A DNA stretch of 64,000 nt, from NCBI GenBank assembly GCA_973895155.1, contig OZ316898.1, positions 21,244,262 to 21,308,261 of the forward strand, written 5' to 3'. Positions 23,549 through 62,899 of this stretch are shown piece after piece. This stretch comes from Marsupella aquatica (Eukaryota > Plantae > Marchantiophyta). The stretch's first letter is position 1, and each line of letters starts with the position of its first letter. A program made the position numbers and the translations under genes. Below the pieces are notes generated by a model. It was given only the letters and a program-made list of their open reading frames with translations. It ran no database searches and had not been told where the DNA came from.

Positions 23549-25296
23549 TTGATAGGGAGGCAATCACTGCTCTTTCCTCTGATCAACCATTGTAGAGTTG
23601 GTTTGGTTTTGAAACCTTCTGGTGATAATGTTGATGGATTCGCAAGATGGGAAGCTCATCGTGCCCTTGACACTATTTCTATGGATGTTTTGGAAGGTCG
23701 CGAGCAGCCCTCCTACAGTGAAACCTTTCAAGATGACATTGGTGAACGATTTGGTAGGGAAGACATGAATGTGGACGGAGTGTCTGAGCAGGATTGCAGT
23801 GGTCGTAGCCAATTTCACTCGGTTGGGCCTGCTGGTCCTCCAACTTTGGGTGCAATGGGAGAGGGCGCACAATCCTCAGCTGAGGCAAGGGGTGAGGAAG
23901 CTGAGGCTTGCATTCCGCTTTTGAGAAGGATCTCAGATCTCACGATACAAAATTGGCCCTCCCAGCTTCACACTACAATTACTTGGTCCCTTGAAGAGGC
24001 GGCTGAGACTGTTCGGGGGCTATTCAACTGCTCCATGATGTGTTATTTCACTGATCGTGCACCTATGCTTCCGACATTTAAATTATGGGTGGAGAAGACT
24101 TTTGTTAACAAAAGGAAGTGGCCAGTAACACAAGTGAAATTTGTGGGAAAGAGCTTCTACATGGTGGCCTTCAAAAATCCTGAGCACCGGGACCTGGCGT
24201 TAGTAGAGGCACCCTGGTTTTTGGAACGAAAGTATGTTTTTACCTTTCCCTGGGACCCATCCTTTGATATCATGAATGAGTCCTACACTCTCTTACCTGT
24301 TTGGATTGAAATCCCTTTTTGCGCATTGCTATTGGAACCCTGTCATCGGAAGCTAGCTGCTTCTCTGGGAGATATTTTGCATTATATCCAGGGTGATGAT
24401 TTAAGCTCCTACCCCCATGATCGTGTTTGTATACTCTGGGACACTCAGCGGGAGGTCCCGCGCAGTGTTGAAGTCCAAATTCAGGCTGATCTCTCCATCT
24501 GGCAACCAGTCATTTTCAAAAATATACCCTTCCACTATTTTATCTGTAATTGCAAAGGCCACTTGGCCGGGGATTGTCGATCACACGAGGAGCAGGCACA
24601 GGAGGCCCCCCTGGCCACTCCTCCTCTTAATACTGATCTGGGTGAGGTTATCCCTGCGGAAATTGTTATTGCTGTTGACATGCCTGCCCCTCTTGAGTCT
24701 GGAACCATGGCGGCTCCTTCTCCTCCCGAGGCATCCCCGGAACTACAACTGCTGCTAAAGATGATCCTGGAGGGAGCTCTTTATTTGGCGCTGCACTGAT
24801 GCTGGCTATTGATTCCTGGCCAGTTGTGATTGCATCGGCGGTGGATGAATCTGCTGAACTGGGTCCCCAAAACCCTCTGGTTAACTCTGTTTCTGTGGAG
24901 AACGAGGTTCCTAGGATTTTTCAAGATCTACAAGCTATGAATGATGAGCCTAAGCTTCTGTTGGCAGCACCTGAGATTACTCTAATGCCTTCTAGGGAAC
25001 TTGAGCCCCTTTTGGCACCTTCGCCTGCCGAAGGGACTCGACTGGTTGTTGTTGGGGAGGGATCTGAGGAAATGGTGGACGACCCCTCTAGCTCTGAAAT
25101 ACCTTCTGATATGGAGCTATCCGAATATGAGGGATTTATATCCCGCTCTGCTCAAAAGAAACACCGAGCTAGGAAACTGGCACGCAAATCCCCACCTGAG
25201 GAGAAAAAGAAGGATAAAGGCAAAAAGAAAGCCAAGAATCAACAATTCTTACTTTTCTCCCTTGATTCTACTGTGCAAGATGCTAAGGCTGGGTGA
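23549..25296 (+). pseudogene. LINE ORF1 (DUF4283-like + CCHC knuckle), disrupted
   Basis: FYMVAF..RDLALVEAPWF..FPWDPSF..PVWIEIP and ICNCKGHLAGDC. Confidence 0.8.
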
Positions 25297-25534
25297 CTCC
25301 AGGACGGAAGCTGACTCGAGAGCAGAATCGCTCCATTGCTGTGCTCCTTGTCCCTGTGGTGGAGGTGCAGCCTATTGCTGAACGGGATCCCCCGCCCATC
25401 CTTACAGGTGGGGCGGTGGGGGTGGTTGGTGGGAATGCTGCTCCCTCTGACCTGCTGAATGTTGAGGCATAATTTTGGCTATTTGTTGCTTCTCCTGAAG
25501 CTGCTTTGCTGGCCCCTTGGAGAAGTGGAGCGAT

Positions 25535-28279
25535 ATGACACTCCTCAATTTTGCATTGTGGAATGTCTGCGGCTTATGTAATCCGGATAGAAAGCATGTG
25601 GTGTTGAAATGGGCTTCTTCAATCCGATCTCCGCTCGACGCCCTGGCTTTGCAAGAAGTAAAGGCTGATGAATTTTGATTGGATAATGCACTGAAGATCA
25701 TCCTACCCGATTATCAGCATGTTTACTCGACCCCCGTTGATGGCAGGGGAGGCACAGCTATTTTACTGCACCCGTCACTTAAGGTACTGTCATTGGGTAC
25801 GTTGGACCTGGGCAGAGCTGTTTGGGCCCAACTTGAACACGCCGAGGGAACCTTTGGGCTAATGAGTGTGTACGCGCCCAACTCTCCAGGAGAATGAGCT
25901 ATTCTCTGGAATGATTTGAAAAACGAATTGCCTCAAGGTTGATGGGTGATCACTGGAGATTTTAACATGATTGAACTCCGATACGATTCCACTGGCTTGA
26001 CCCCGTTGATCCGCGGGAGGGAGTTGGAATTCTGGAGGTTTTTGAAGGTTCGACTTGACCTGCAAGATGCACTCTCTATTCTTGGTCAGGTATCGGGATC
26101 CAGGTTTACCTGGCGCCGGATACAAAATGGCGTGTTGACTCAATCTTGCCTTGATAGGTTCTATTTCAGTGAGAAAGGCCAGTGGACGGAGAAACTGGTG
26201 GAACTCAAACATGATGGCACATCGGCACTATCGGACCATGACCCTATGCTGATCTCTTTCCGCATTGTCCCCTTGCTCACGTCTGCTTCTGATCAATGAC
26301 GCACTTCTTACTTCAAAGCTAACCCTTCTGTGGTCAGGAACTCTGCAAACTTGGGACTTTTGGAGGCTGCCTGGATTGGGGATGCCGCTCCCCTTGCTGA
26401 ACCTCATCTGCAATTTTCTTTGGCGTATCAGCGTCTCCGCCAATGCTACATGACGCTACAATCTTCACCACTGCCCAAGGCTGAAGAGGCTGCACTACTG
26501 CGTGACAAACTTTGACTTCTAAAGGTTGCTATTATGGAGGATTACTCCACTGACAGTATCACACAGTTTATGGATACTGAAGATAATGTACGTTCAATGG
26601 AACTTGAAGATGCTCACCACTGTGGCCGACTATCTAGGATTAAATGGCTGGGCCAGGGTGACGAACCCTCTAAGTTCTATTTCTCCACTGTTAAGGCCAA
26701 ACGGCTCAGAGAAAAGATGGAATATCTTGTGATTGATGGTGGCACGGAATTAAGGGAGGAGCGACTCATTGTTGGAGAGGTACAATGTTTTTGTGAGGAG
26801 CTGTACTCATCGCCATTACTGGAAGGAGAAGAATTGAGGAAGCAGCGAACAGCACGCAGGACTCTAAGTAGGAACACACATTTTGCCCCTACTACGGCTG
26901 AGGTTAGAATGCTTGAAGAGCTGCCTTCTATACGTGAACTGCATGACACTTTGTTACTTCTTCCCAGTGACAAAGCTCCTGGTATTGATGGCATGACTGC
27001 GGAGACCTTCAGGGCTTGCTGGGAATTCATGAAGAATGACTTTCATGACATGATCTGTGATTTCTGGAGGACAGGACATCTGGCTTTCAATATCAAAGAT
27101 GGGGTTATTCATTTTATTCCTAAGAAAACTGATAAGCGAAGACCCGGGGACTGGAGAGCATTAACCATGTTAACCATTGTATACAAGCTCTTGGCTAAGC
27201 TACTAGCCCTTCGTCTAAAAATGTTACTACCTAAGTTGATCTGTCCACAATAGACAGGCTTTATCCCTGGGCGGCACATTTTGGAAAATATCTCTCACCT
27301 GGCTGGTTAAAGACTGGATTAACTATACTAGGACCCCGGCTCTTTTCTTGAAACTGGATTTTGAGAAGGCCTTTGACAGAGTGGATCACTCTTACATATG
27401 GGAAACTATGAACCTGTTAGGCCTTGGCTCACATTTTATTTTTCTAGTAAAGTCTCTGATCAGCAATGCCTGCTCTAAGGCTCTCGTCAATGGCATCTGG
27501 ACTGAGGATGTGAAGATGTCCAGGGGTGTGAGACAAGGCTGCCCTCTCTCACCTCTTCTCTTTGTCATATCTACTCAGCCCTTGATGGATTTTCTTACAT
27601 CGGAGATTAATGCTGGTAGATTACAGGGTTTGCAGATTTCCAGCTCTCTACACATATGTTTTAGACTTTTTGCAGATGACTTAGGGTTGTTCATCCCGGC
27701 CTCAGCGGCCGCCTTTGAGCAAGCCAGGAGTGCTCTCACTTGCTACAAAGATGCCACAGGTGCTAAATTGAACTTAAACAAGTCAGTTGTTATTCCCCTT
27801 GCTGTGGAGGTGATCCCGAGCTGGCTTTTGGCTACTAGATGTCTAATTAGTGAAAGAGGAGTGGTACAGAAATATTTGGGTGCTCCCTTTGGCTTGGATC
27901 TTACTGAAGCACAGCTGCATGACTTTTGCCTCGACCGGATTGGAGCCAGACTATCATCTTGGTCTACCCGTTTTCTATCTTTCACTGGAAGGGTGTTGCT
28001 GATCAAACATGTTTTACTTGCCATTCCTGTATATCACATGATGTTTCTGCGATCCTCTGCTTCTCTGGCAAAGAAGCTGATTGCACTCAGTCGTGTTTTT
28101 CTTTGGGGGATTAACAATCAGGGGGGGAGCGAATTCCACTGGTGGCCTGGGAGAAGCTGGCACGACCTAAGGTGGATGGTGGCCTGGGATTGAAGGACTT
28201 CCGTAGTCATTCTGACGCTCTACTAAGTAAATGGTTTATTGGGGCGCTTGATAGACCGGAATCGGAATGGGCAAGGATG
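25535..28279 (+). pseudogene. LINE ORF2 (APE endonuclease + reverse transcriptase), disrupted
   Basis: WNVCGL, LQE, VYAPN, GDFN, SDHDP (EN); KAPGIDG, LDFEKAFDRV, RQGCPLSP, LFADD, KYLG (RT). Confidence 0.92.
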
Positions 28280-29801
28280 GAATGGATGAAGAAACTTTGT
28301 GAGTTTTGGCACTATCGGGGACTGTACAAGATTTGCATCCCCAAAGGAATTTCAAGCAAATGGTTGGTTGATCCACTTCATGGGTTCTGCTCAGCACATT
28401 GTCTGGAACATTACAAATAAGAAAACGAATGTTGTCTAATGCGGTTTCTTTGATCCTTTGACGGATAGATTAGATGGCTGTCACCTGATCGGGTCTTTAA
28501 GGCAGATGAAATTATTCTGGGTCTTGGACGTGTCTCCTATGTCATGAAGCAGTTGGAATATGTTATCTCTCGGACACGAGAGGTGGATCGCATAATGCGG
28601 ATGAAGATCCCAGACGATGACTAGAGGAGAAAGATGACTATTTCTCCGAATGTTGTGTTCATGAAACTTTTCAATGAGAGACAAAGGTGGAGGAATGGAT
28701 TCGAGGGCATCCAGTAATCCATGACTGGATGTGCCCAAAGAAGAAAGAAGCTAGTGGAAAGGAGATGATTAGGATTGTCGATGATCATGAGGAGGATGAT
28801 GAGCCCGCATCTGGAGAGAAAAAGTCCCATGAAACAATTTCTGTATATGAGTCAGGAAATGAGGATGATGGAGAGAAGGGAAATGTCCAAGAAGAGAGCA
28901 AGAAGACTATTCAGAATCAGGCGGAGTCAGAGACAGAGTCAGAGTCGACTGGTTCAGAGGGTGGGGTTCAGCCAACCGACGAAGATGTTGAGAGCGGGGA
29001 AATTCAGCAGAATGAGGTCATCCCCACACCAAAGCCTACAAAACAGAAGCGATACACAAAGACTTCAAACAAAGCTAGGCAGTAACCGCAATCATGGGGA
29101 TTTGGGATGTAACAACCATGGATCTAGAGCCGGCCCTTGAAGCCAAGGACTCTTCCCCCATTGACATGACCCCGGAGCAGGCCGGTTTCTCACCACCATA
29201 GTTGACCAGACCTTGGCAAGCCTATCCGGGTGACAAAGGCAAGAAGTGCAGGGCCAAGTTCACCGTCAGGAGGAACAGGCAATTCCTGGAAAGTTTCTCA
29301 TCGACTTGCTGGGAAACGTCGCCAGGAATGTCTGCCTCGAGATGGGTTTGCTCTTGACAATGAAAAAGGATGGTATCCTTGAGGGACATCTTCACTGCCA
29401 CCGAAGCCGAGTACCAGGCTTGCTAATATCAGTGGGAGGATACAGAAGACCGACGCTACACTGAGACTACCGAGGCAATCAAAGCACATGTAAAAGAGGC
29501 CATCGACAAAATAAATGAGTATGTGGCTTGCTCATTCATCACGACCATGGACAAGGACGATCATTGTCCTCTCGAGCCCGAGGTTGATTGCCTTAGGCGA
29601 GAGGTCAACGAGCAAGGCCAGCTAGCAGACATGCTGACGAGTAACGTCCATGACTTGGAGGACGCCTCTGAGGATGTGGCGGAGGAGGTCACCAGATCCA
29701 GATCCGGGTCCTACAAGAGGACAATGATCGTCTGCGGGGTCATCCGGACTGGCGGTCCGGATCTAGTTCGGGGTGGGACTAGCAAGCATGCCAAGCATTA
29801 G
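28280..29801 (+). pseudogene. Degenerate unidentified coding remnant (acidic low-complexity + coiled-coil-like), probably TE-derived
   Basis: Plus-strand ORF fragments 28687..29085, 29246..29464 and 29523..29801 with protein-like composition. No recognisable domain. Confidence 0.35.
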
Positions 29802-30887
29802 GCGGCGGGATTCACGGAAGATGGAAGCACCAGCGTCCGGGCGACACTGGCTAAGATTAGGTTGGGATTACACCGCTGGCTTAGCTCAGGCCGCAGGTAT
29901 TAGTGTAGGGCGTCTCAAACCCCCTCAAACCCCTACACGTTGTCGAACTCCTTTGGGTCACCTGGATGCCTCTGGTCCCCGCCTGCCCGATATTGAACAC
30001 CGGTACCCAAAATTGGACTATCAAGTCCTCCCATTTTAATTATGCCTCGCTTTGTTCGCAGTTACAATCGTTTCCGGGACGCCAGGAGATTGGTACCTAT
30101 AAGCTTTTCTAACATCAGTTGCTATTTTCAAGGTTCGCACACAATGCGATAATCAAATAGTTCAACATTTGGTTACGCAACTTGTTTTCCAACCTTGTAA
30201 TAGAATGAAGAGAATTCTGCAAGTGTTTGTATTTCTGTGAAAGCTCGTGATGAGGAACGGAATGAGGAGAGCAAACCCGACCACCTACCTAACCCGGGCA
30301 GCCCACGCCAGTGAAATACCGGGTGCCAAACTGTATTACTAAAAACATAAGTTTCAGTCAGTAGCCCTAGTGCGTAGTGGTAGACTTAGTAGTAGTAGCG
30401 GTAGTAGTAGGGAGGCAAAGTTTTAGCCGGGGCACAAGCACGAACGGTCGTGGGTTTAGCATGGGTTATGACTACCCCGCCCACTAAACCCTTTACCCAC
30501 CCCTCAACCCTGCATGACAGTCATGTGGGGGCATCTTTGCCATGCATTAGGTTGGTTTAGTGGTTGAGTGGTTGAGTGGTTTCCACAATTTTCCTATTTT
30601 GAGTCGGGTCAGTGTATCACCTTGGTCAGCTAGCACGCCCTATTCCTTTCCTAGGGTGGGAAGACGTCTCGCACAGGCCTGCTGCACTAAACTGAGCTTC
30701 TTTTGCATTCGACATAGTCTCTGGTCTGCAACAAGGATAGAGCAAGCTCACTTCATTCTTCTGATGATGGTTTCATCCTCATCACAGCGGCCGCCACACG
30801 CACAAAATTGTTCAGCATTCTCTCCGTGTCCTTTGAAAGTAGCCAAGGCTCAAATTTACGGTCATCCAATGGCATGTCAGGAAACAA

Positions 30888-33800
30888 CTACCTGAGTCGT
30901 CTGCGCGAGTCGTCATTCCTATATGCATGCCAAATTAGAATTTGTATCCTCTCTCCGGACAGATCGTTGCAGGTGCTGCTCTTGGATTCCCCCCACTTGT
31001 GCACCTGGGTTTGCCCGATTTGATCAAACGGAAAGAAGCACTTGAAGCAAGCATTATTATGGCATTCTTGACTCTTCACATTACAGTTGGAAACCCGATG
31101 GCGATTGGACAGACACCGCAGGCATAACCCTCTCATTACGCCACACTCCCTTATTCCATGATTTATGTGAGTCCTCCCAACACAGGAGACATCGCCTCCC
31201 ATCACCCCCATGCCGGCGAACATAATTGAGATCGATGATATCTTTGCGCATGTTTGCCTCTATCCTTATGCTTTCCGGTCTCGGAATATATACATCCTGA
31301 ACAGCTGCTCCGTCTGGCCTTGTGTGCGAGTGGTGTCTCGGGTGATTGCCTCCACTTCGGCTTGGCGTGGTAGCCGCGGCTTCCAGGCACACGTCACATG
31401 CCAAGCCGTCGGGGAGCAGGGCACAAACCTGTGCCTTCCCGTCCATCTCAAGGTGAAGGTTGTATCACCGACAAATGGTACTGTTCGTGATCCATTGGTG
31501 CGCAATCTTCATGCTCTCCTGGTTGACTCCTTCAATTTGCACGGATGGCGCGGACAACGCCCAGGCACGATAGTCCTTGTGTGAAACCACCATGCACACT
31601 CCGGGCCGGCCGTCCCGTCCACATCTGCCCGACTCTTGGTGGTACTCTTCCATTGACCCATAAAAGCCTCCCCGATGCACGACCAAGAGAATGTTGGGAT
31701 AGTTATATCCGCAGGAGATCACTGAGGTTGCCACCATGACTTTAGGCGTGCCAGCCTCCCAACTTCGTAGCTTGCTAAGTCTATCTGCCTTCACGATGTC
31801 GGAGGTTAAGAAGCAACTTTGGACATGATGTTGTCGCAGAGTTTGATCCAAATCCACAGCTTCACTCTTCGTCATAGTGTATACCAGGGCTCTGTCCTCT
31901 GTGCCGGCAGTGGCCATCCAATCACGTAGAAGTTCCACGATTTTCAAATCCAGCCTGGCCTCATCGTCCACAACTTTGTACTTGAGGTTAGGTCGTGTTG
32001 TACAGGACCGAATCACCTTCCATGGACTTCCCAACTTCCACCATAATGCTGCTTCCTTGCGGGGTGGTAGAGAGGCCGTCAATCCAATCAGCTGACAATG
32101 AAGTCGGGAAAGCCAGAGAAGCTGTGCCATGGATTGACGGTAGGGACACAACACCTGATGCACCTCGTCTATGACGATTGAATGCAATTTGCCGGCGCAA
32201 ATGAGTTGTCTGGCCCAACTTTGGAAACTCTCTTGGATGGCAATCTCGACAGGGACAAACACGAGCAGAGGCGCCTCTGCCACAGGGATACAGCTCACCC
32301 TGAACTCCAAACAATCAAAACCTGCGGCCCTGCACTCCGCCAGCTGAGTGTGGATCAACACATACAGAGGAACGATGACAACCACCGTCTTCCCGCTACT
32401 CCGAGCGGTTGCCATGAAAACGGCCGATTTCCCAGAACCCGTGGGTAGGATGGCTACAAAATTCTGCATGTTGTCCACCGCCGTGGCAACTGCAATTGCC
32501 TGCTCACGCGTCTTCCAATCCCTGTGACCAAGGCTGAAAAGTGCAATCCGTGCTTCATACATCGCAGCAGGGTCCAGGCCCTCAAGTTCATTGCCGTGAT
32601 CGGTGTTTGATCCATCATCACATCTGTGCAGGATCCGGATTCGCTTTGAGGGCGGAGCGAACTCAACTTCCACACCTGGGTGAAGCCGGACCACTTCTGT
32701 GCCTGGCCACAGCTCAGGCTCAGGCTCGGCCTTGGCCTCGGCCTCCGGGTGTCTCCTAAGGTCTGTGGGCAGCCGCAGTAAATGGTGAAGCTTCTTTGCG
32801 ACAAACCTAAAGTTCCTCCACTCATGTTGATCAACAACTCTTAAATCCTGGCTATTCTGTGCATAGTTATGGCCAGTGGTGGACACCGAATGGCCTGCAG
32901 ATGCATCCAGCCGCTCATTAGCCAGTGATATCTGCAGCTGGAACCGAATGGGCTCGGAAAAGAACGTTATAATGTGCCGATGAGGCCTAATCCCAAATGG
33001 GGCCTTGAATCGTTTCAAAAACTCCCTCTCCACACCTGCACTCACATGCCGTGTTGAACGCCTTTTTCCGGTTTCAACTAACCAACAATCCGTGTACACC
33101 GCTACTTTCTCTCCACCCCACAATTGACTCGCAACGAACACCTGCACAAGCCTCACCACGCTAAGGTACTGGAGGAAGGCTAGCCTCAAACATAGGGGTA
33201 AGAACCGAATGATGTGCTTTGAGCGTTTCCGACCACACGTTTTGTTATATGTTTGGTGTATCACCAAGGTCCCTTCTGCCCACAGGAACGTCCGTTGGTT
33301 GGTTGTTGTGTTGCGGATCAAGACTCTGCTGTACTCCGCTGCCCTAGCTGGCTGACCCGATGTAAAATGCAGCAACCAAGTGAGCCGGTCGTTCAATCTA
33401 TCGGCGGCGGCCAGCCACTCGCGTAGGGCCTTCTTGTTCCACATCTGGATGTCGTTCTCGTCGTAGCGATGGACAAAATGTGATGATCTCATGTCATCGG
33501 AGAACAGATGCTGGTGCAATCGTGCCTGTGCTCGTGGAACGGGTTTCTTTCTTTGGTGAGGAACGAGTATCCGTTCCTATCTTTGTTGAGCTCGTCCACA
33601 ATTACGCTGCCCCCGGGTACCAACAGTTGCTCCAACCAATCCGTGTCCAGACCTAGAAGAACTTGTTCCCGCATGAGGACGGTGCATTCACTAATCACCG
33701 CCATCACCATTTCTCTATAGCCATCCAGTGTGATCGGGTAACCGTTCACTTCGCATTCTATGTAACCGGGCTTTGATGCAACGAGATCCGGTCTTTTCGG

Positions 33801-35490
33801 CTTTTCGCCGACGAGCGAGCAGATAAGGGTCTGCCAAGAAGAAATGTAGCCAAATGGTGTCTCTATTAGCCTGGGTTTATCCTCCACGTACGCCAGAATT
33901 GCTCTCGCATCTTCGACATCCAGGTCATCCGCTGCCGCTCGATTCCAAAGAGTGCGACATAACTCCATTTTGATTGCCGCTCGGCACCAGAATTTCATCA
34001 TTGACAACATTGGGGTGACATCTGTGGATTCCTTCCATGCATAACCACTGGAGAGCACGCACGCTTTGAGCGAGGACAAGATCAAAAACTGCAAAAAAAA
34101 ATTGTCCGTCAATTTCCGGGCTACCACCTTCGTCAGATGTGGGAGGGTCCACAAACCGAGCAACAGGTCGTGTAGGACAGTGTAGTCAAAGTGGTCCGGG
34201 TCTATGGGACCCTCTGAAAGGGACTCCAACTGGATCTTTAGGGCTTGGAGAAGGACCTTCAAGCGGTCGGGAGCCTTCACAACGAGGAGCACATGGGAGC
34301 CTGGAGGATCACATGCAGAGAGCAATAAAGTGAACAGGAAATTTGTCATGACCGAGCAATACTTCTCTATCGTGGACTCCTGGAGGAACTCGATGAATCC
34401 CTGTGGAGAGTCAGGACTCACAACCAATGTCCTCACTCGGAAATCCACCTCGACCACGACTTTTTGCACAAGCGTGGCATACGAGAGCACAACATCCGGG
34501 ACCCGTGCATATGGGGAACCTTCCCGGCGAGCCAAACGCATGGGACCACTGATATCGTTGTACGTTGAATTCTCTGGTATGAGTCCTGCTGCAACCTTCA
34601 CCCATCCAGTGGCTCGCAGCCACGCGGATAGATCTCGAGGGGGAGGATCGTTCTGTGCGGGGAGCGTCCACTCCATCTCAAGAATTGCCTTGGACAGCGC
34701 GGACTTCAGGCTTTGGTTGCTACGTCGGGCTCGGTCGGCTGGACATCGGACTGCAAAGTACTTCTTCCCGACACCTTGAACAAGACATTGAACACTACTA
34801 CTGCAACGCATGGTCATATCGGTAACTTCGGCATGCACTCGTATCGTGTGATTACGCATAGTCTTCCTACTTGTGCTGTGGTAGGTAGTGCAAAAGGGGC
34901 ACGAGTAGCCTCTGCGGACAACGATACCGAGGACTGGGGAGAATAATCCCCGAATATAATGATCCCACACTGCACTGGGGGGGTTAATTGCATCCCTGTG
35001 ATGGCCATCGACAGCTGTCGCTCATCTTGTCGGCTCCATAAGCTTCTTCCCCCATTCCTATGGAGGGCGCGAAATCCTTCCAGACATGCCTGCAAACCGT
35101 CCCCACGCTGGAACCATCCAGGATAACATTGCAGGTAACGCACAAGAGCAATGCCATGCCCTCGTACTTCACCACAGACAAATCTGCTCGACTTAACACA
35201 TCTGGGGTGTCCACAAATTCTGAGATTGTCGCCACCCGGGGACTTTCATTACTGGGAACCGAATCACCCGAATCACCTGCTGGGACCGATGCACGACTAT
35301 GGGTTGTCCCTTGGATGTGTTCTCTGGCATAATGGTTCTGCAAGCGGTCCGGTTGACGGAAGCGAGACAAGCAAGAACGGTGAGGGCACGGCCAATCACG
35401 AGCTACGGATATGCGGACTGAAGATCTCGTGCCATCAGCCTCGACAACATTGCAAATCGACTGATGAACTGTGCCTGGCAGCTGGCGGCA
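30888..35490 (-). pseudogene. Zn-finger/DUF3505-like + tyrosine-recombinase-like + RecQ-family helicase fusion gene (telomere-linked-helicase-like architecture), disrupted
   Basis: C2H2 finger CPHRSC..F..L..H....H. Motifs LLLCVTC..H, GYSCPFC..MRNH....H..VQCL..YFAV and SAWLRATGW. YR-like TSGQPARAAE / YNKT / RPHRH / AGHS..NYA. Helicase LPTGSGKS, DEVH, TAS, TTRPNL, ATSV, QESGRCGRDG. Zn-binding CR*..DG..C..CDVC and a Cys-rich tail. Frameshifts near 34980, 33500 and 31170; in-frame TGA at 31465. Confidence 0.85.
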
Positions 35491-36831
35491 GGACTAATCA
35501 ATGCAACCTATCATTTACTACCCTTGTCAGAGTCATTTGCCCTTATTTGGAAAGACGGTCCATCGCAATTCAATGGGCCGACGGCTGTACCCGTGAGTGT
35601 CATCATAATAATAAGGACCCTAAACCGGCCCCCACCGTTGTTAGTGCATACAACATTATTGTATCGCTACCGTAGGGGCAGTATTGTGAACAACAACAAC
35701 AATGCTACTACTGTTGCAAGAAATTCCTTTTTGCAAACTCTCAAATACCAGGCCCATGACCGAAGGGTAGTAGTAGTAGATGAAGTGTTAAAGTAAACTG
35801 TTGAAATATTCTACGCTCGATTACGCGGATGAAAGTCATGTTTCAGATATGACTGATGACATTTTTCAAGTATTGATTAAAAACCAGGAGTTATCTTGAA
35901 GTGAGTGATACATCATGATAAAGAATTCATCTAATATCTCTCTGCATCAAAAACATGTGTAAAACTCTTCCTCTAACAACTTGTTTTGTGGTTCTCTCAG
36001 GGACGGGGCCAAATTGACTAATTAGAGAGCGACACCAAGTTCGGAACGCACATCTTTATTGTCCTCTTTCATCTTCCAATTTTATATTTGACATGGTAAT
36101 AATTCACAACCATGTAAACAATTAATTAAACCATGTAAACCATGTAACGTTAGAAATACTGGGCAGCGGGCAGTCACGTACTGGGTTAATAAAGGCTAAT
36201 GGCATTCATTAGCCTCGATCTTGCCTTTCGTTCTTAGTAACAATCAGCACATAATAGGATGTGATCATGGATTGCATTCTTGAAGGTATCATGTACCCAA
36301 ACTACCCTTGCCTATGCAAAAATTAAAACCTGGTTGGGCCCGTTGCGGGGACAGAGTGTAGGCCTTGTATTTTTGTGAGGAAAGTATGCAAAGAAAAGAG
36401 CTTGGAATCCACTTGCCATGATATTAGGATAATGATGAGAATTTTCTTTTACTAGTATGTATTAACAAATTGAATCTTCAAACTAAGTTGCCCAAGATCA
36501 AATTACAGATAGTTATAACTAATGGCTCAATCCAAGCCATCATTTTTCTTATGGCATAATCTTGTTATTGTAGATGAGCTTTGATGTCATTCTTATAAAT
36601 TTAATTTAATGCACATAAATTTAATACAAATTTACAACACTACTCTGAATGTACTTTGGCTATATAAATTACGTGAAAGAATTGAGTTTGGACCCACATA
36701 CTAGTTCAGCACCTTGGAAAGAGTGTCACAGGTGACCTGTGATGCCTAGACAGGAATCACTCGGCCGGTTAAGTGGGTAAAGCAGGAAGGCACCCTAGGA
36801 ACACCTTAGTATAGTGACAAAACAAGGAAAA

Positions 36832-36837
36832 TATAAA
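36832..36837 (+). promoter_or_regulatory. Candidate TATA box near the LTR 5' end
   Basis: TATAAA is conserved in all four family-A copies that include this region, upstream of the LTR ORF. Confidence 0.4.
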
Positions 36838-36852
36838 CAATTAGGGGCAACC

Positions 36853-39800
36853 ATGGAACCCGGGCCGAGGCCGGAGGTAAGGCTAAGGGTGAAAACCCGA
36901 TTAGGGTTAGGGCGCGTTAAGCGTCGGCGGCTAGGAAGGATCAACGGGAAGAAGGACCGGCAGAGGAGAGGGGTAAGGAGCGCTTGCAGGAGATGGTGGC
37001 TCATTTGCGAGCACGAACTAGGCAGACGACTACGGGAGGCCAACTACTGTCAGCTGCTTAGGCAAGCACTCGGGGAGAGAGTAGATACCGACGATCGACC
37101 TAAGGAGGGTATGAGCAACGTCAATCAAGCGGCACATTTCTGGGGATGCCTGTTCGAACGGGCAACTGAGTACATCAAGACTTACGAGGACGAGGAGTCA
37201 GAAAGGGCAGCTCGAGAACGGTAGGAGCTCGCTCAATTGTGGGAGCTGCAGAAGACGGCTTTCTTAGGAGGCGAACTCATCAAGGATGAGTTCCTGTGGA
37301 CGCCTACTTCCAATCAACTCGACGATCTTCTGTTTTGCAAAGACAGCGTCGTCGGCATCCGAGAGGCCATCAAGAACTGCAACGACATACACTGGGAATT
37401 AAAGGGTAGCACGGAAAGGTGGACCCAGGCAACGGTGCTAGGAGAAACCTCCACGGCAGCAGAGATGAAGAGGAAGGGAGCCGTCAACGATGAAGCCACC
37501 CCGGCAAAAAGAACGAGGTCGGCGGCACCAAAGAAGCCAGCCGAGCAGCAGAGCAGGAGGCAGGGAGAAGCCGAAGAGGAGGAGGTCGATCCCATCAAGG
37601 CCATTCCAACCAGGGATGACACCTGGAAGGGCTGGGCAGCAACCCTACCGGTGGAGGTGCAACTACATTTTGCACGGGAGGAGGATGCATGCTTTACGGC
37701 CATGCAGACCAAGAAGTACCAAGGCTTCATGGCCGGATCCGGCTTGGAGGCCTTTGTAAGATTACCATGGCTGAAGCCGGAGGTACCGGAGTCAGACCTA
37801 TTAGAATTCGTGGGGTCATGGGAACCCGAGACCAATTGCACGAGGATATATGGGAAGGATTTCTATCTTACTCCCAAGGTAATTGCCGAAGTGTTTGGCC
37901 TGCCGATAGGCAATAAGACCAAAGTTGATACCAGGAAGACCTTGCCTGACAAGGAGTTCCGGTCGTTCCCCGGGCCATCAACGAAGAATGGCTTCTTCCG
38001 GAACACCTGCACCAACCCGCACATAGGAGAGATGATCGACTTCTTGCGGGTGACCATGCATTGTAACTTGCCGAGGGCAGAGATCGGCAAGGCACAGGTC
38101 TATATGGCAGAAAGGCCAGACCCAAGCCGGGACTACAACGGGTACCTCCTCAACCAATTGAAGAAGATCTTAAAGGAGGAGCAGCAGGTAATCGGCATGG
38201 GGAGCGTGTCGCGGCTTGGCTATCACATGCCGCTGTTGTGCCGGTATGCCAGAGGTCAGACTTTTGCCCCGGTACTTCCCCTGCAGGTAAGGGCACCCAA
38301 GGAAGCTCCAACGCCGAGGCCGTTGGCTGAGAAGCCTCAACCACCTGTTAGTCCTACGATCGAGCAGGTGTTTAGGCCCAGGAAGGAAGACTTGCCGATG
38401 CAGCAACCAGGCATGCAGAGTCTGCTGAAACTACTGGAGAAAGAAAAGAAATCGGCATCGGCAACAACAACGGCAACGGCAACAATGCAGGACACTACTA
38501 CAGAGGTAGGCCTACACCGGCTCACAAGAGAAAACCCCTTTGCTGGAGACAAGGAGAGAATCAGGCCGGAATCCAAGCCAGGTGTTCGAATGTACGTGGG
38601 AACCTCAAGCTCCGAATCTGAGGCAGAATTGCCTGAAGCTCCTACCGACGAAGAGGAGAGGGAGAAGCCGGACGTCCAAGAGGTAGAGGAGGCAGTGGAG
38701 GACTGCAGCCATGATAATTCCGGCTATGGGTCGGACCATCACGTTCCAGGAGTAAGGACCTGTGGCCGGTTTGTCCCCACACTTCCAAGGGTAGTGCGAG
38801 GGGACCCCAACCAGCAGAGTAGCCCTGAGTCTCCCCCACCAGATGTTGCTCCCCCGAGCTTCGACGGCATAAAACAGACGGTGCAGGAATTTCAGGAGCG
38901 AATCAAGCAGGAGGAAGAGGCCGCCCTGGCTAAGGAAAAGGATTTACCAGGAGGAGATTGGCCGGAGGACATCAGGCGGCTAGCCGAAAAAGGAAGCAAA
39001 CCTCTAGCCACGATTGAAGAGATCCGCAGGACGGCTTGGGAGCAGAGGCCACGATGGGCGATGCCGATCACTTCTACTTACTCCACCTACGCTAAGAATA
39101 GAGCCATGGAGTATGGTGAGATGTGTGGGGAACTTGCGCTCGGCATCTTTGGAGAGGAGTTGGAGGAAGGACCCTTTTTCCATAGGGAGCAGTTGGAGAA
39201 GCACCAATTAGAAGAAGCGGTGGCTTTAGAGAGAAGCAAGAAGGACGAGGTCATTCGGCGGCTTAGGAGGATGGAAGCCGAGATTGAAGATCTAAGGGCG
39301 GCCAAGAAAGCCCAAGATGAACTACGGATTAAACGACATGAGCTGAACATCATGCAGGGGCAGTTGGACACCGCGCAGGCTGATAATCAGAATATCAAGG
39401 ATAAACTGACTCAGACGCAGGAAGAGTTGGCCGACACGATCAAAGAGAGGGAGAAGTGGAAGCAAGAGCTGAAGAATACAGAGGAGGCCCACATAACAGC
39501 CAACAGCCGGGCCATGGCGGAGACCCAAAGAAAGGAATGGGCGTTAAAGGGGGAGCTCGAGAAAATCCGCGGAGCCCTTGAACAGAAGGAGGTCGAGTTA
39601 GGGAAATCCTATCAAGGGATTATGGCGCTACAGCAGGAGTTTGCGTCCCTGACGGCCAGCTTCAAGGCCGACCTAAGGGAGAAGGACGAGATGCTCGAAC
39701 AGACTTACGCCAAGATGAACCAGATGGAGTCTGTCATCATTGCAGAGCTCGACAAGGAGCTAAGAGCAACCCAGGAGGAGAGGGCTACCTTGAAGAAGGA

Positions 39801-40476
39801 ATTGGAGGAAGCCCACAGGGAGCAGGAGGAGGCCAAAAATGAGCTGGAGGGGGCACGTAAGGACCTGGATGAAACCCAAGAGGAGTTGGAGGAAATCACG
39901 AGGAAGATGGAGAACCTACAGCGGCGGGCCGACAACCAAACAGAGCGGCTGAAGAAACAAGCCGCAGTATTTAAATGCTTAGCTGCAGCAGGTCCATCTC
40001 CCGTTGGGACAAACCAGTTACCAGGGGTGGTAATTGCCGAAGGACAAGCCGCGCCAACTGCACCAGTGCCGGAAGTAAGTGGGAAGGGGAAGGGACCAGC
40101 TGCCGAGCCACCAACGAAGAAGAAGCGGAAACCTTCAGGGTCAAGGAGTAATACGACTTCACAGGCCGTGGTGATCAAGGAGGTAGACCCAGCACCGACC
40201 CCAGACAGGGTCACGGCTAAGGATCCAACTACCCTAGGGGAAGGGGAGGCCGAAGCCGAGGGAGTGGCTGAAGCCGAAGCCGTGGGAGTGGCTGAGGCCA
40301 AAGCCGTGGGTATTGCCGAGGCCGGTGTCGAGGCTGAAGCCGAAGGTGGACCCAGTCAGGCCGATGGAGAGTTGACTCGGTCAAGGGCAGGTAATCTGTC
40401 AGTAGGCGGGCCAACGGCAGTGGCTGAGGAGGAAGTGTTGGGGGCGTCCATTGAGGATCCACCACCGGTGTCGTGA
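36853..40476 (+). pseudogene. LTR-encoded ORF, 1207 codons, single premature TAG at 37222-37224 (1079-aa open segment remains)
   Basis: 36814..37224 and 37237..40476 are in the same frame; the TAG is CAG in the 3' LTR. Central PMD/plant-transposon-like domain, long heptad coiled coil and KKKRK basic motif. Confidence 0.9.
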
Positions 40477-41402
40477 CGGTGCAAGGGCGCCGTTCCTTTT
40501 AGGGAGGGCGGACGTGGAGGGAGGAGGCGTGAGTGGGCAGGGCGGGCACGGATCTCCACGTTTAGGATTAGGATCAGAACCAGGAGCGGCCCTGACACTT
40601 AGCTTAGTGGGATTGCGGTCCCACTGGTAGGAGCAACACTTGTGCTCCTGCCTTGCTGTACATAGGTAGATTCGGGCAAGTAGATTACTGTCAGGTAGAT
40701 TAGGCTTACGATGCAAAGAATGGCGGATCCACTACCAGGATAAGTACCTGGGCAGCGGGGAGCTCAGGGCCTCTTCTTTAGCAAGTTTTTAGTTTGCACC
40801 AGCCGGGCTGGGATCAAGTAGTACGAGAAGCTCTCGGTTAGTCATACAGTGACCCTTGTGTATATTCATGTTTCCTCATGCCTAAGAGCTGAATAGAGTT
40901 GGCCTCACGGCTTAGTTCGCAGAACTTGTGTATGAGATGTACTGTTTGTATGGCAAGTGCATGGTATGACTCAGTCAGAATGAGTCATTTTGCTATTTGT
41001 GTGTCGCATTAACTTGTGTGAAGAGTGCCCACATCAACAGAAGGAAGGAAAGTAAGCAGGGGAGTGAGAGTTGGATGTGTCGAGCTGAGAGAGGTCTTAG
41101 CGGCTTAACCAAGCCTATTGGGGATCATTCCGGCGGCGGAATCCAAACATACCTAACAAGACGGAGGGGAAGACAGGGGAAGACAGGGGAAGGCCTATAT
41201 TAGGCCGGCTACGTATCTCATGACCCGATGAAGGATCTGTCCAGTATATGTGTGTAAAATGTTAATAGTAGTAGTAGAAGGTTAGCAGCGTCCCATGCCG
41301 CTAAGCCACGGAAACGGCCTCGCCAAGCATGAAACCTGCGGGAATCGGCTTGAGCTGGGGGGGTTTCTTGGGTTTAGGGAGCCATGGGACGCACCACATT
41401 TT

Positions 41403-41420
41403 TGGCGCTAGATGGAGGGG
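41403..41420 (+). other. Primer binding site
   Basis: TGGCGCTAGATGGAGGGG, 4 nt after the 5' LTR. TGG is complementary to tRNA CCA; the cognate tRNA is not identified. Confidence 0.8.
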
Positions 41421-41467
41421 GCATTTCTTAAGCCGTGAGATATGAAGTTAGAACGGAAGCGTAGGTA

Positions 41468-44461
41468 ATGACTGACCTTACGCCGAGGGAAGAAAGAGTG
41501 ATTCAACGGGAGAGAGCTCGACTGCAGCAGCTCGCCGGGTGGCATGATACACAGCGACTGAGAGGGGCAGAAAGAGCTGGTAGCTCCGAAACTGGAAGTG
41601 GCGTCGAAGAAGACATACCAAAAGAAGAGTCGGTAAGGAGAAGTGAGTCTCCAACCGACATGGGGGAACCAGAGGCACGGCCAGACGAGAGGCCAGGGAC
41701 CAGATTGAGCCAGCGGTCGCGCATACATTACAAGGCATTTCATGGGAGAGGAGATGAGGATCCGGACGAATGGTTGGATGATTTCGAGGGAACCGCTGCA
41801 GCAAATGGAGAATCGGCCATCAAGATGCAGATTCTTCCCGGCCTGTTCAAGGGTGAGGCTAGGCCTTGGTACAGAGCATTAGATGTGGAAGATCAAGCCA
41901 TCTGGGATATCTTCAAAACACTCTTTGTTAAGGAGTTTCGACCCATTGGAACTTCAGAACTAGCAGTGCTGAAGTTGGGACAACTTCGGTTCAAGGAGAA
42001 CAAATCCTTCAGGAAGTTCTTGCAACGCTTTCAGAAACTGGTAAGACGTACAAAGACCAATGCATCTGAAGGTATGCAACTTCAATGGTTGGTGAATGCT
42101 TTGCCACAGAAGATGAGTTTTGCAATTAGGAAGGAGAACCCGGAGACCTTAGCCGAAGCAATTAAGGATATTCAATTATACATTAATGCAGATATCACAA
42201 GCCGGAAGAAACAGCTTAAGTCTGAGAGTTCCTCATCAGAGGAGGGATCACCCCATAAGAAAAAAGATAAGAAGAAGAAACATTCCAAGAAGTCTAGAAG
42301 TGATAAGTCAAGCTCGGATAGTGGGAGTAGCAAGAGTGAGTCATCTTCTAGTTCTGAAGAAGAAAAAACTAGGAAAAGGAAGGGCAGAAGGAGAGGGAAG
42401 ACGAAAGTCAAGATGGAGGCTAAGCCACCAGATAACATCGTAGCCCTTACCGAGCAACTTAAGGCTATCATTGCAGAGGTAAAACCAAAGAAGAAGGTAG
42501 TACAGGAGGATAGCTCTGTATGGTGTGCCTTATGTTATAAAACCGGACACCATAAAGATGCGTGTCCTAAGCTTAATACTAATCATGTTCGGCATGTGGC
42601 CAAGATCAGACCATGTCAGGGAGAAGTAGAGTACTTTTTGGGAGATGCCGCTGATAGTGTTTTCGGCATCAGTGAGACTGGAGCACGAGACCTATCCAAC
42701 AGACCTGCATCTCTGTGGTCAGGGTTAAGGAACAATCCAAGAGAGATGTATCCTCGGATTATTCAGAACCCGTCAGTACCTCCTAGGCCGAATGTGCAAA
42801 GATTTGCGGCGTGCTATAATTGTGGTCAACCTGGCCATTTTGCTAGAGAATGCCCGAATGCACGCAAACAGGGTGATGGACAACCAGCTCAGCTATGTAT
42901 GGGATGCCGACAGGAAGGTCATATGCTAGGGCAATGTCCTACTTGGTTGGCAGGCCTGGCCGCAAATCATAAGCTTTTGCCGATCAAGATCTTACCGCCA
43001 GGTACTACCCCCGGAGGAGTTCAAATCAACCACATCGAACTAGGATGGCAAGAGGATGCCGAGGCAGAGTTCGTACCATCTGATGATGAGGCCGAAGCCC
43101 TATCAACCTTCTCAGAGGAGGATTTAGATCATGATTGCTACCGGGTCTCTACTCGATCTACCAGAAGGAAGGAAAGGTGGGATGGGCTGGCCAAAAATAA
43201 AGGGAAGGTTACGGAGGAAAGGATCGACTCTTCGTCAACATCAACAGAAGGAGAAGGGAGGGCTCCGGCAATACAGGTAAGCCATGAGCCCACCAGTGAA
43301 ACCAATCCTTCACAAGATAGCGACTTCAATCGAGATCATCCTAAGTTGTTCTACCCCTCTGTTACGGCTAGTGTTAAGGAACAACTAAGAGAATTAGAAA
43401 CCCTGGAGAATACCGAAGCCATTGCCAAGGATGTAAAACGAGCAAAAGCATTGTTTGCTTCGGAAGACCCAACAGCTGTGGAGACTAGCGTGGCAAAACT
43501 GGCCGAATCCAAGACGGAAACACCACCAGAAGAGAAGCCGATTGTTCCCTATGACCTGGCTAAAGATGTACTAGAATCTAGAGTCTCGGCAACAGTAGGT
43601 CAACTATTGAAAAATAGCCCGTACTTCCGGAAGCAATTAAGGAAGGCTATTCTCGGCAAGCCGAGATTACCCAAGGTAGCAACCAGATCCGACGTACTAA
43701 TGATAGAAGAAGATCAAGGAGCCCCAGCATTACCATTAATGATTCAAGGAGAATTATTACTACGGGTACCCATCGATGGAGGATCAGGGGTATGTATTAT
43801 GATTGATTCAACAGCAAAAGGGTGGGGTCTAACACCGGAGATGACTGGAAGAGTGTTGAACATGGCCAATGGATATCAGGTCATTCCGACGGGAGTGTTA
43901 ACCGGCATCAAGACAGAGATAGGAGGTATCTTCTTTAGCATTAACTATGTAGTAATGAAGCCGGTAAATCCTACGTCATTCCGGCTATTGATTGGTAGGC
44001 CATGGCTGTACCTAGCCGAGGTAATAGAAGATTGGGGTAAAAAGCAGTTCACTTTCGGGACCCCCTCTATCACGGTATCCTGGGACACTAAGGATGACCG
44101 TAGGAAAAGCATAAGGGAAGTAGATGGGTACGACAGTGGACTGGAGTCAGCCGATGAAGTACGTTGGTTAGAATGCCTCACTAACCTAACCGAAGAAGGT
44201 GTCTTTGGACCAGAGGTACCCCCCAACGGATTATGGCAAGAACCAATGGAAGGTGACTTGGAAGAAGAAGACGAAGAGGTCGAGGACTGCTTTACAATAG
44301 AATCCACCTTTTTAGCTGCAATTCCGGAGGAAGTAAAGGATGTAGACCAATTGGATGAAACGGCTAAGTGGGGAGCAGTAGCAGGGACAGTGGATTTTCT
44401 GCAGGCGTTGTGGCAGAGCCGACGGGGTCCACAACGCCATCGATCATCGGCAAGGAATTAA
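41468..44461 (+). CDS. gag: Gag-protease polyprotein (capsid-like domain, three CCHC zinc knuckles, aspartic protease)
   Basis: 997-aa ORF: FHGRGDEDPDEWLDDF..ARPWY; CALCYKTGHHKDAC, CYNCGQPGHFAREC, CMGCRQEGHMLGQC; IDGGSGVCI and LLIGRPWL. Confidence 0.93.
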   Translation: MTDLTPREERVIQRERARLQQLAGWHDTQRLRGAERAGSSETGSGVEEDIPKEESVRRSESPTDMGEPEARPDERPGTRLSQRSRIHYKAFHGRGDEDPDEWLDDFEGTAAANGESAIKMQILPGLFKGEARPWYRALDVEDQAIWDIFKTLFVKEFRPIGTSELAVLKLGQLRFKENKSFRKFLQRFQKLVRRTKTNASEGMQLQWLVNALPQKMSFAIRKENPETLAEAIKDIQLYINADITSRKKQLKSESSSSEEGSPHKKKDKKKKHSKKSRSDKSSSDSGSSKSESSSSSEEEKTRKRKGRRRGKTKVKMEAKPPDNIVALTEQLKAIIAEVKPKKKVVQEDSSVWCALCYKTGHHKDACPKLNTNHVRHVAKIRPCQGEVEYFLGDAADSVFGISETGARDLSNRPASLWSGLRNNPREMYPRIIQNPSVPPRPNVQRFAACYNCGQPGHFARECPNARKQGDGQPAQLCMGCRQEGHMLGQCPTWLAGLAANHKLLPIKILPPGTTPGGVQINHIELGWQEDAEAEFVPSDDEAEALSTFSEEDLDHDCYRVSTRSTRRKERWDGLAKNKGKVTEERIDSSSTSTEGEGRAPAIQVSHEPTSETNPSQDSDFNRDHPKLFYPSVTASVKEQLRELETLENTEAIAKDVKRAKALFASEDPTAVETSVAKLAESKTETPPEEKPIVPYDLAKDVLESRVSATVGQLLKNSPYFRKQLRKAILGKPRLPKVATRSDVLMIEEDQGAPALPLMIQGELLLRVPIDGGSGVCIMIDSTAKGWGLTPEMTGRVLNMANGYQVIPTGVLTGIKTEIGGIFFSINYVVMKPVNPTSFRLLIGRPWLYLAEVIEDWGKKQFTFGTPSITVSWDTKDDRRKSIREVDGYDSGLESADEVRWLECLTNLTEEGVFGPEVPPNGLWQEPMEGDLEEEDEEVEDCFTIESTFLAAIPEEVKDVDQLDETAKWGAVAGTVDFLQALWQSRRGPQRHRSSARN

Positions 44462-47400: not shown

Positions 47401-47634
47401 CTACTTTATGACAGTAGGTATAGTAGGTTTCCAGGAAAGCTTTACACTCGCTGGTTAGGACCCTTTAGAGTAACCATGATGTTCCCCAATGGCTCCGTAC
47501 AATTGGCCAACATTACGGGAGAGGTATATCCAGTTCGCATCCATTATGACCGCCTCAAGAAATACTATATGGACGAAGATGAAGTTGTTCGCGAGGATGC
47601 TTCACAATTAAGTGGGGAGCTATGTGATGCCTAG
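44368..47634 (+). CDS. pol: Pol: reverse transcriptase, RNase H, integrase (-1 frame relative to gag-pro)
   Basis: Uninterrupted 1088-codon ORF: CQDYRKLN, FMDGYSGYNQI, FIDDFAV, VDVSG..TEREAL..TDH, H..GH..CDPC, WGIDYIGP, SDRGTHF, NGLTERAN, WLGPF. No chromodomain. Confidence 0.95.
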   Translation: MGSSSRDSGFSAGVVAEPTGSTTPSIIGKELNTKGSAYKPITRAEQIEALLEAERAQRPNSQEQEVDEMDRHDLEPRQEGEPTTNSKPNRPVRGQSMDTKEGTDSASPAEIPVYGGMRLERLEAELDPNLKKQINMIQARQYRKLDLGEGRELNLGRNLAPELEKEISDLLIEFQDVFAWSHQDLKGVDPTLGEHRIDLMLGAKSFRQPIRRMNPKYSLLVKTEIDKLVEAGFITPVLHSDWVSPIVIVPKKAGPDGKPKIRVCQDYRKLNEATLKDHFPLPFTDMVLDMVANHELYSFMDGYSGYNQIRIRQEDQIKTAFITEWGIYVFNRMSFGLCNAPAMFQRLMVNIFHDYLRKFMEIFIDDFAVFGKASKHAKYLRKTFMRCREVGLKLHPDKCFFAVTEGVLLGHKVSRKGIEIDKGKLAVWLDIMQPKNIKDVRSFLGCIGYYRRFIKDFAKLALPLTNMLKAGADFEPTPERVTAVVELKQMLVEAPVMIAPDWNKDFHVFVDVSGFCIGSVLSQLDEKGRDHPIYFASRQLADAERNYSTTEREALGVIYSCKKFRHYLLGYKVIFHTDHESLKYLVNKPDLTGRVARWILLLQEFDYELRIKPGKLHANADFFSRITGKPATDCIDDRFPDEELFIVEIADTWYPKILQFLSTSRLQPGLSREQAAVFVRKVRQYQCIKGILHKHGINGTIQRCLEKREVKRVLRAMHGEEARGHSAPVTTSKKILNVGYWWPTLHKDVYQFIKQCDPCQRAGGPRASTRHPLHPILPLAPFEKWGIDYIGPLKPLTHPRRNKYIILATDYATKWVEARPTTKDDAITTARFMYEQIFTRYGAPLELVSDRGTHFLNDIISRLNEQYLVKHRPTTPYHPKANGLTERANGIIGKILNKTVAQNKLDWDDKLFAAVFAYNLAYKSTTGHTPFFLTFGQEALVPMQLEIPTFQVTIEERASAEESLKEREYRLEALEEARMISAERVEYRQNIMKQQYDKRLKVVSIHTGDLVLLYDSRYSRFPGKLYTRWLGPFRVTMMFPNGSVQLANITGEVYPVRIHYDRLKKYYMDEDEVVREDASQLSGELCDA
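44392..44451 (+). promoter_or_regulatory. Candidate -1 programmed ribosomal frameshift signal (slippery heptamer + stem/pseudoknot)
   Basis: G GAT TTT in gag phase at 44392-44398, a 5-nt spacer, then a perfect 10-bp stem ggcgttgtgg/ccacaacgcc. Loop gccga is complementary to downstream tcggc. Pol is in the -1 frame. Confidence 0.72.
47610..47622 (+). other. Polypurine tract
   Basis: aagtggggagcta lies directly before the 3' LTR and within the last pol codons. Confidence 0.85.
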
Positions 47635-52272: not shown

Positions 52273-52584
52273 TGACCCATCTCTCACCCATAGGAAAACA
52301 GAAATTAAAAAAGAGAAAGAAGAAAAAAGAAGAAAAAACAAACACATTGAAAGTGAGTTAGGAGAGAATAAAGATAGAGGGAGCCATTGATGATAGTATA
52401 TTGTATAATTCTATACCTAACAAGAACTAACGAGTGTTTGTAGACGGTACCCAAATAGTATGCGGAGAAACTCAAAGTTCTACGGTACCCCCACGACCGA
52501 GCTTGTATCCTCTGGGATACGGATCGGGAAGTACCGGCTAGTGTAAGGATTCGAATCAGAGCTGACATTGTAATCTGGCAACCA

Positions 52585-56864: not shown

Positions 56865-57249
56865 TGTTGAGCATAGACGACGATCGCAACGGCAAGCCCA
56901 TGAACCATCCAACGCACAATAGTCGACACAAGAGATACGTGGTTCACCTCCTTGAGGCTACGTCCACGGGAACACACAAGAGAGCTTTACTGAACTCTAA
57001 GCCCGTCGGCTATACCGAGTCTCCACAGTGTAAGCTCTCCCTATCTCTCAAGTGGCTCCATAACAATGAGCCTTGGTTCTACCTCTCCAAGCACACATGC
57101 CTCTTATGATATAGTGTGCAACTTAGTTGTACCTAACCACATAGTTGTACCTAATCACGTAGTTGTACCTAACCACGTAGTTGTACCAACCCACGTTGTT
57201 GTACCAACCACGTCATACCTAACCTAGACGTAAGAGTAAATACCCAACA
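56865..57249 (-). repeat. Copia 3' LTR (385 bp)
   Basis: TGTTG…CAACA. A purine tract (minus strand) is adjacent at ~57250-57262. Confidence 0.95.
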
Positions 57250-62897: not shown

Positions 62898-62899
62898 AT

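Follow-up and report, generated by a model that had tools for sequence, protein, structure and literature searches.

A decayed telomere-linked helicase-type gene in a liverwort genome and the predicted tyrosine-recombinase fold of its family-specific domain

What kind of gene is a long helicase gene lying among the retrotransposons of a plant genome, and could its own product have brought it there? The question is raised by a 64,000-nt stretch of the liverwort Marsupella aquatica (contig OZ316898.1 of assembly GCA_973895155.1, positions 21,244,262 to 21,308,261 of the forward strand), which we call the window and in which all positions below are counted. A reading made from its letters alone (the sequence-only reading) had proposed an unrecognised mobile element, now pseudogenised, in which a tyrosine recombinase is joined to a RecQ helicase. 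According to our analysis, the gene is very probably a fossil copy belonging to the type known as telomere-linked helicases (TLHs), and the domain peculiar to this family has the fold and the active site of a tyrosine recombinase.

We read the minus strand in three frames and obtained a path of open pieces, listed in Table 1. The broken frames were neither joined nor mended; each open piece was searched alone, and an intact relative was used for co-linearity. This relative, P0024, has 1654 amino acids (aa), was found by an exhaustive HMMER search and is 48% identical over the best piece. Its residues 30-1650 are co-linear with window positions 35400-30771 in a tblastn alignment, and because this alignment is interrupted only at frame changes, the gene has no introns. 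Beyond the TAG at 30890-30888, homology to P0024 goes on as far as about 30771, which puts the end of the original gene at about 30759, some 130 bp past 30888. At the other end, a candidate start ATG is found at 35514-35512, with an in-frame TAG behind it at 35496-35494. The locus is thus a single co-linear, intron-free gene of about 1,580 codons on the minus strand, from about 35,514 to about 30,759. The sequence-only reading had described such a long intron-free gene among plant transposable elements, and its extent had to be corrected.

TLHs are defined by two C2H2 motifs, a TLH domain of about 250 aa upstream of the helicase, and RecQ motifs, the C2H2 patterns being Cx2-3Cx8-14Hx3-5H and Cx2-5Cx11-16Hx4-5H (10.1101/2024.02.27.582403). 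They have been reported from fungi and Monosiga, and the fungal TLH genes form subtelomeric gene families (10.1101/2024.02.27.582403; 10.1101/2022.03.07.483234). All three features were found in the window's gene, namely two N-terminal C2H2 motifs, a domain directly upstream of the helicase and RecQ-type motifs. By this architecture, and with the named TLHs compared by description, the gene appears to be of the TLH type. No named TLH was among the protein search matches, in which the named fungal relatives were hypothetical proteins of Ceratobasidium and Aspergillus. Word-indexed protein searches with a 684-aa piece, the P0024 domain and a 26-sequence profile recovered almost no family members, and it was the exhaustive HMMER search that succeeded. 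Among the papers we found, TLHs are described solely from fungi and one choanoflagellate, and our literature search found no paper joining a TLH with a tyrosine recombinase. The word "unrecognised" in the sequence-only reading therefore holds in part: the gene family is already known as TLH, whereas the recombinase domain and the occurrence in a liverwort seem to be unreported.

The domain upstream of the helicase (residues 20-275 of the frame from 33576, from which domain residues are numbered) is conserved in 88 relatives that also bear the helicase. Both R78 and K112 are present in all 88, H229 and Y238 in 87 of the 88 each, and R200 in 86; E81, N89, R95 and Y110 are near-invariant. From the letters alone, recombinase-like residues had been picked out in GQPARAAE, YNKT, RPHRH (32988-32974), GH (32895-32890) and NYA. 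Their coordinates are exact (Table 1), and the retention of R, K, R, H and Y in 86-88 of the 88 relatives indicates that the pattern is not a chance one.

We then examined the predicted fold. A model built from a 69-sequence alignment reached a predicted local distance difference test (pLDDT) score of 84.6 and a predicted template-modelling (pTM) score of 0.81. When it was searched against 48,161 solved chains, the top nine were all tyrosine recombinases, as the sequence-only reading had anticipated, with Z 8.1-11.0 over model residues 56-270. The best match was XerH (Z 11.0, root-mean-square deviation 2.5 over 126 residues), and XerA (10.7), XerD (10.1) and Cre (8.7) were also among the matches. 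Type IB topoisomerases ranked behind the recombinases (Z 6.7-7.4), and then came QRICH1 (Z 6.7), Ndc10 (Z 5.3) and Flp. In the structural alignment, R78 lies at most two residues from Arg I of Cre and XerD, and R200 falls on Arg II of XerH and Cre. The active-site spacings are 34/88/29/9 here, versus 28/91/23/9 in Cre, 24/75/23/9 in XerD and 23/76/22/9 in lambda Int. Additionally, a weak hhalign comparison with four recombinases (P 0.011) placed R78, E81, H229 and Y238 exactly on R148, E151, H270 and Y279 of XerD. Taken together, the model and the conserved residues support the catalytic fold and the active-site set of a tyrosine recombinase.

Upstream of this domain, the helical part of the gene gave a model with pLDDT 79.2. 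Nine of its 13 best rows are recombinase-type N-domains (Brujita Int, XerA, XerD, IntI, SroF and Ndc10), with Z 4.1-5.3, which is the noise level for helical bundles. These matches hint that a core-binding N-domain may precede the catalytic domain.

The remaining parts follow the order that had been read from the letters, that is, C2H2/OrsD, helical region, recombinase-like segment, RecQ with its zinc motif, and Cys-rich tail, as seen in Pfam, PDB and fold searches. The Pfam match to OrsD (formerly DUF3505) is weak in this copy (0.017) and clear in relatives (5e-12 to 4e-10). On open piece 3, Pfam reports DEAD at 8e-14 and Helicase_C at 1e-13, and a PDB sequence search finds RECQ5 and RECQ1 at about 5e-16. 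In the open pieces, no match was obtained with the Pfam models RecQ_Zn_bind, RQC and HRDC; both the family consensus and this copy contain a four-Cys motif, CR(R)...C...CDxC.

Table 1. Features of the TLH-type gene and its immediate surroundings in the window
Feature	Position	Strand	Remarks
Tyrosine-recombinase-like catalytic domain ("TLH domain"), predicted	32767..33411	-	fold and conserved residues
Catalytic residue, Arg I (GQPARAAE)	33345-33343	-	putative active site
Catalytic residue, Lys (YNKT)	33243-33241	-	putative active site
Catalytic residues, Arg II-His (RPHRH)	32979-32974	-	putative active site
Catalytic residue, His II (GH)	32892-32890	-	putative active site
Catalytic residue, Tyr (NYA)	32865-32863	-	putative active site
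N-terminal piece	34987..35514	-	C2H2 motif Cx4Cx12Hx4H and first CxxC of OrsD-like zinc module; P0024 residues 30-222 match (tblastn)
Second open piece	33519..35021	-	second C2H2 motif Cx2Cx13Hx4H (OrsD match) and long helical region
Helical part	33813..34505	-	weak best structural matches are tyrosine recombinase N-terminal (core-binding) domains
RecQ-like superfamily 2 (SF2) helicase core	31609..32508	-	motifs I (GSGKS), II (DEVH), III (TAS) and VI (QESGRCGRDG) intact
RecQ-type Zn-binding motif	31387..31473	-	CR-stop ... C ... CDVC; TGA replaces the family's second Arg of CRR
Cys-rich tail	30759..31259	-	CCHC knuckle at 31124-31083
Open piece 1	35493-34987	-	three-frame reading
Open piece 2	35021-33492	-	three-frame reading
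Open piece 3	33576-31468	-	three-frame reading
Open piece 4	31464-31084	-	three-frame reading
Open piece 5	31259-30891	-	three-frame reading
First frameshift zone	34987..35065	-	frame switches between 35021 and 34987; extra G behind 35064 in other copies
Second frameshift	33517..33518	-	one extra base behind 33517 in most contigs of other copies
Third frameshift	31155..31170 (~31163)	-	8 extra bases behind 31163 in other copies
TGA stop	31467-31465	-	other copies have G for A at 31467
TAG stop	30890-30888	-	other copies have G for A at 30890
(CTA)n microsatellite	35768..35786	-	~255 bp upstream of start, gene's strand
(CTA)n microsatellite	30374..30410	-	~350 bp downstream of gene end, gene's strand

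At least three frameshifts disrupt the gene copy, as do two unambiguous in-frame stops (Table 1), and the TAG behind the candidate start is a possible third stop. It is a pseudogenised copy, a fossil, as had been claimed from the letters. Other copies, seen as contigs of public sequencing runs, are unbroken at four of these sites (33517, 31163, 31467 and 30890), and the frame arithmetic agrees each time. Since the other copies read differently there, the breaks are a property of this copy and not of the family. The window's own letter at 31467 was seen in no contig of the public runs, and at that one place the assembly may carry a reading error.

The stretch, or part of it, is present in five public runs from three studies. 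In one run, the contigs over the stretch fell into the identity classes 99+, 95-99 and 90-95% in numbers of 62, 63 and 49, and the summed contig depth over the gene was several times the depth of contigs identical to the flank. Several identity classes together with the excess depth over the gene imply that the family lineage is multi-copy; we are thus not dealing with a single syntenic host gene, a case that would have spoken against the sequence-only reading. One contig of one run links 31858 to 34862, skipping 3003 bases, and may represent an internally deleted copy; its shorter side has 30 letters. This joint and another one skipping 774-775 bases were distrusted, because both have only 30-letter sides and come from single contigs.

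Of the relatives with a named source, two loci in the leafy liverwort Calypogeia fissa are the closest; their DNA differs too much from that of the window for the window to stem from this species. A tree of 125 rows, most of them without an organism label, groups the window's gene with P0024 (support 96), and then with a Calypogeia protein and P0026, in a fully supported plant clade that stands apart from the Ceratobasidium clade. The phylogeny that the sequence-only reading had called for thus gives the plant copies a well-supported clade of their own. Tree neighbours of this clade include P0035 and P0189, two full-architecture members that NCBI lists as parts of metagenome bins of bacteria and cyanobacteria; both are probably eukaryotic contigs that were wrongly binned. 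An ENA metagenome contig (L004, 1-10089) carries an intact 1549-aa relative and, 1.7 kb further, a second gene, unrelated at the DNA level, that also begins with an OrsD module. Both ends of this contig enter (TACATATA)n-like simple repeats.

Does the gene sit in a unit with recognisable ends? We found no inverted terminal repeats around it, and its flanks match nothing else in the 64-kb window. The relatives L002, L003, L013 and L014 are too diverged at the DNA level for flank alignment, and five metagenome contigs of one relative all turned out to represent the same locus. Where read contigs had loose ends, most of these were indels with homology continuing on the other side, and not borders. 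The gene is bracketed by two (CTA)n microsatellites (Table 1). On the gene's strand, about 0.09 sites of (CTA)4 or longer are expected per window, and other such sites occur only in the two long terminal repeats (LTRs) of one element. Further, the bin 30498-30696, which covers about 200 bp between the gene and the 3' (CTA)n, has the depth of a single copy; the unit repeated at 90% identity or more therefore stops short of that microsatellite. On the 5' side, similarity to one other copy reaches 35892 and so passes the (CTA)n by 106 bp. L002 lacks the repeat, and in L003 it is internal. These data do not fit a simple insertion model; insertion into (CTA)n may or may not have taken place.

Two other observations concern the same repeats. 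(CTA)n also lies near the 3' end of both giant LTRs, at 41263-41280 and 52138-52155 on the same strand. Downstream of the gene, a stretch resembling a long interspersed nuclear element (LINE) occupies 23549-28193 on the plus strand, with a DUF4283 open reading frame (ORF), plant-specific, at 23549-24799 and reverse-transcriptase ORFs at 26534-28193. Its 3' part may run toward the (TAG)n at 30374-30410, in which case the repeat could be the tail of the LINE and unrelated to the helicase gene.

How, then, did the gene come to lie here? We favour, at a probability of roughly 0.6, a TLH-type recombinase-helicase whose own activity moves or copies a gene-sized unit. In intact members, the recombinase domain would form a covalent 3'-phosphotyrosine link by which DNA is cut and rejoined, while the helicase would unwind or branch-migrate the substrate. 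A compact, gene-sized unit could in this way be copied or moved within or between chromosome ends, and occasionally to internal sites like this one. We set the value no higher because the spread of the family is something we infer. Several results weigh against this explanation, beginning with the architectural basis of the TLH assignment. We detected neither termini nor target duplications, empty sites or circle junctions, and no RNA run was among the public runs containing the stretch. When the domain was searched by itself against Pfam (including Phage_integrase) and against PDB sequences, there was no match at all, of a recombinase or otherwise, up to E 10. Foldseek against the PDB gave none at E 0.001 or below, only E 0.15-0.4, with recombinases heading the list. 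RPHRH had been listed among the recombinase-like residues; its Arg II (R200) is indeed conserved, but R197, at the place of His I in HxxR, is not, and position 197 is occupied by S (27), R (19), Q (10), A (10), N (7) and K (6) in relatives. There is also no TTTAGGG telomere repeat within the 64-kb window, so this copy is not near a telomere. Fungal TLH families likewise have stray copies, and the non-telomeric position therefore bears on this copy and not on the family.

A different account would make these genes a host family for chromosome-end upkeep. In it, the domain acts on recombination intermediates supplied by the RecQ helicase, resolving them as a Holliday-junction resolvase would or relaxing them like a type IB topoisomerase. 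Copies would multiply passively when subtelomeres recombine or segments are duplicated, and the present copy would be a stray duplicate. Such a role would suit the description of fungal TLH genes as subtelomeric families and the lack of detected transposon ends, and type IB topoisomerases have the same fold (Z 6.7-7.4). They carry Lys at the place of the first His, and here, too, that position is variable. We hold this account, the main rival, to be less likely than our own, since the copy is surrounded by LTR retrotransposons, the 64-kb window has no telomere repeat, many copies are decayed, the gene is intron-free in a plant, and recombinases clearly outscore topoisomerases in structure. The domain might instead be a DNA-binding module without catalysis, like Ndc10 or the Crypton-derived QRICH1. 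Ndc10 (Z 5.3), QRICH1 (Z 6.7) and the NDC10_II family (atlas score 0.87) are indeed among its matches, and the first His is lost. Yet the Arg, Lys, Arg, His and nucleophile Tyr are near-invariant over 88 diverged relatives, which would not be expected without catalysis, and active recombinases score far above Ndc10; we regard a purely binding role as quite improbable.

A fungal contaminant or a misassembled chimera is the least credible explanation, and we give it hardly any weight. The family has been described from fungi, and the nearest atlas clusters are fungal. However, in three runs, which carry two organism labels and belong to two studies, contigs free of differences cover 30218-30503, 30474-30824 and 30320-30709 and bridge the left flank and the gene's 3' end, although one run may be the source sample, so that its support against a chimera is not fully independent. 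The sequence-only reading had asked for a check of the junctions by long reads; at this junction, the contigs speak against a chimera. The copy also sits between plant LTR and LINE elements, and its closest relatives come from a liverwort assembly and form their own clade. Beyond the reading of a self-moving recombinase-helicase that we prefer for this family, one may tentatively ask whether TLH genes overall are autonomous tyrosine-recombinase plus helicase DNA elements. They would then form an unrecognised superfamily mechanistically akin to Cryptons, found in fungi, choanoflagellates and bryophytes. Its members would insert at chromosome ends or copy themselves onto them; internal positions would be reached more rarely, perhaps where simple repeats such as (CTA)n lie. 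We would not bet on this broader view at present.

TLH genes have been known from fungal chromosome ends for more than 25 years, yet neither how they spread nor what the domain peculiar to the family does has been explained. With a conserved active site of the tyrosine-recombinase type in this domain, DNA cutting and rejoining by TLH proteins becomes a direct and testable hypothesis, and the recombinase domain may explain how TLH-type genes spread. In addition, a decaying multi-copy family in liverworts extends the TLH host range well beyond fungi. The value of this fossil copy is that it is interstitial and has decayed independently; the family has been resident in the plant's genome for a long time and also occurs away from telomeres.

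The neighbours of the gene in the window are plant-type Ty3, Ty1/copia and LINE-like elements, one of them with DUF4283. A young Ty3-type LTR retrotransposon spans 36738-52283, with very long LTRs at 36738-41398 and 47623-52283 that are 97-99% alike. Each LTR contains a long ORF (37237-40476, 1079 aa) with no Pfam match, and an inverted copy of the LTR sequence, 96% similar, lies at 825-3870. On the minus strand, a Ty1/copia element occupies 56865-63340, with RVT_2 at 57441-59939. It is bounded by two direct repeats (56865-57164 and 62900-63199) whose identity is 100%, and behind each of them stands an array of 18-bp tandem repeats (57103-57267 and 63138-63338). No Rfam family was found within 28000-37500.

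We finally compared the gene with known systems. With the TLHs (S. pombe Tlh1/2, M. oryzae TLH1, U. maydis UTASa, those of F. oxysporum and B. cinerea, and that of Monosiga brevicollis) it shares an identical order of parts, including the C-terminal Cys motifs, a large intron-free ORF, and membership in a multi-copy family with many decayed copies. Unlike them, it is hosted by a liverwort and is interstitial, not subtelomeric; and whereas the papers we found give the TLH domain no function, here the domain appears to have a tyrosine-recombinase fold. With the tyrosine recombinases themselves (XerC/D, XerH, XerA, Cre and phage integrases), the domain has in common the fold, at Z 8-11, and the Arg-Lys-Arg-His-Tyr set with similar spacing. 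Box I reads G-x-P-A-R-x-x-E here versus T-G-L-R-x-S-E, and box II reads A-G-H-S-x-x-T-x-x-x-Y versus L-G-H-S-x-x-x-T-x-x-Y. It differs from them in giving no family match at the sequence level, in the absence of the first His of HxxR, in an aromatic residue before Arg II, and in being fused, within a protein some 1600 residues long, with a helicase and zinc fingers.

Among mobile elements, Cryptons likewise are compact units with one recombinase-bearing gene and no terminal inverted repeats, and the Crypton-derived QRICH1 matches the fold. To our knowledge, Cryptons carry no RecQ helicase, and our literature search found no paper linking Crypton and RecQ in this sense. Starships, giant fungal elements with a DUF3435 tyrosine recombinase, are also a eukaryotic element type that uses such an enzyme. 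The unit here, however, is gene-sized (about 5 kb) with no cargo seen, and DUF3435 was unmatched at E up to 10 in the Pfam search of the domain. As a functional analogy, RecQ with topoisomerase III (the "dissolvasome") and reverse gyrase pair a helicase with an enzyme that cuts and rejoins DNA, in both cases a type IA topoisomerase. The present protein may combine comparable activities, but its partner domain would be of the recombinase/type IB fold and is fused to the helicase in one chain.

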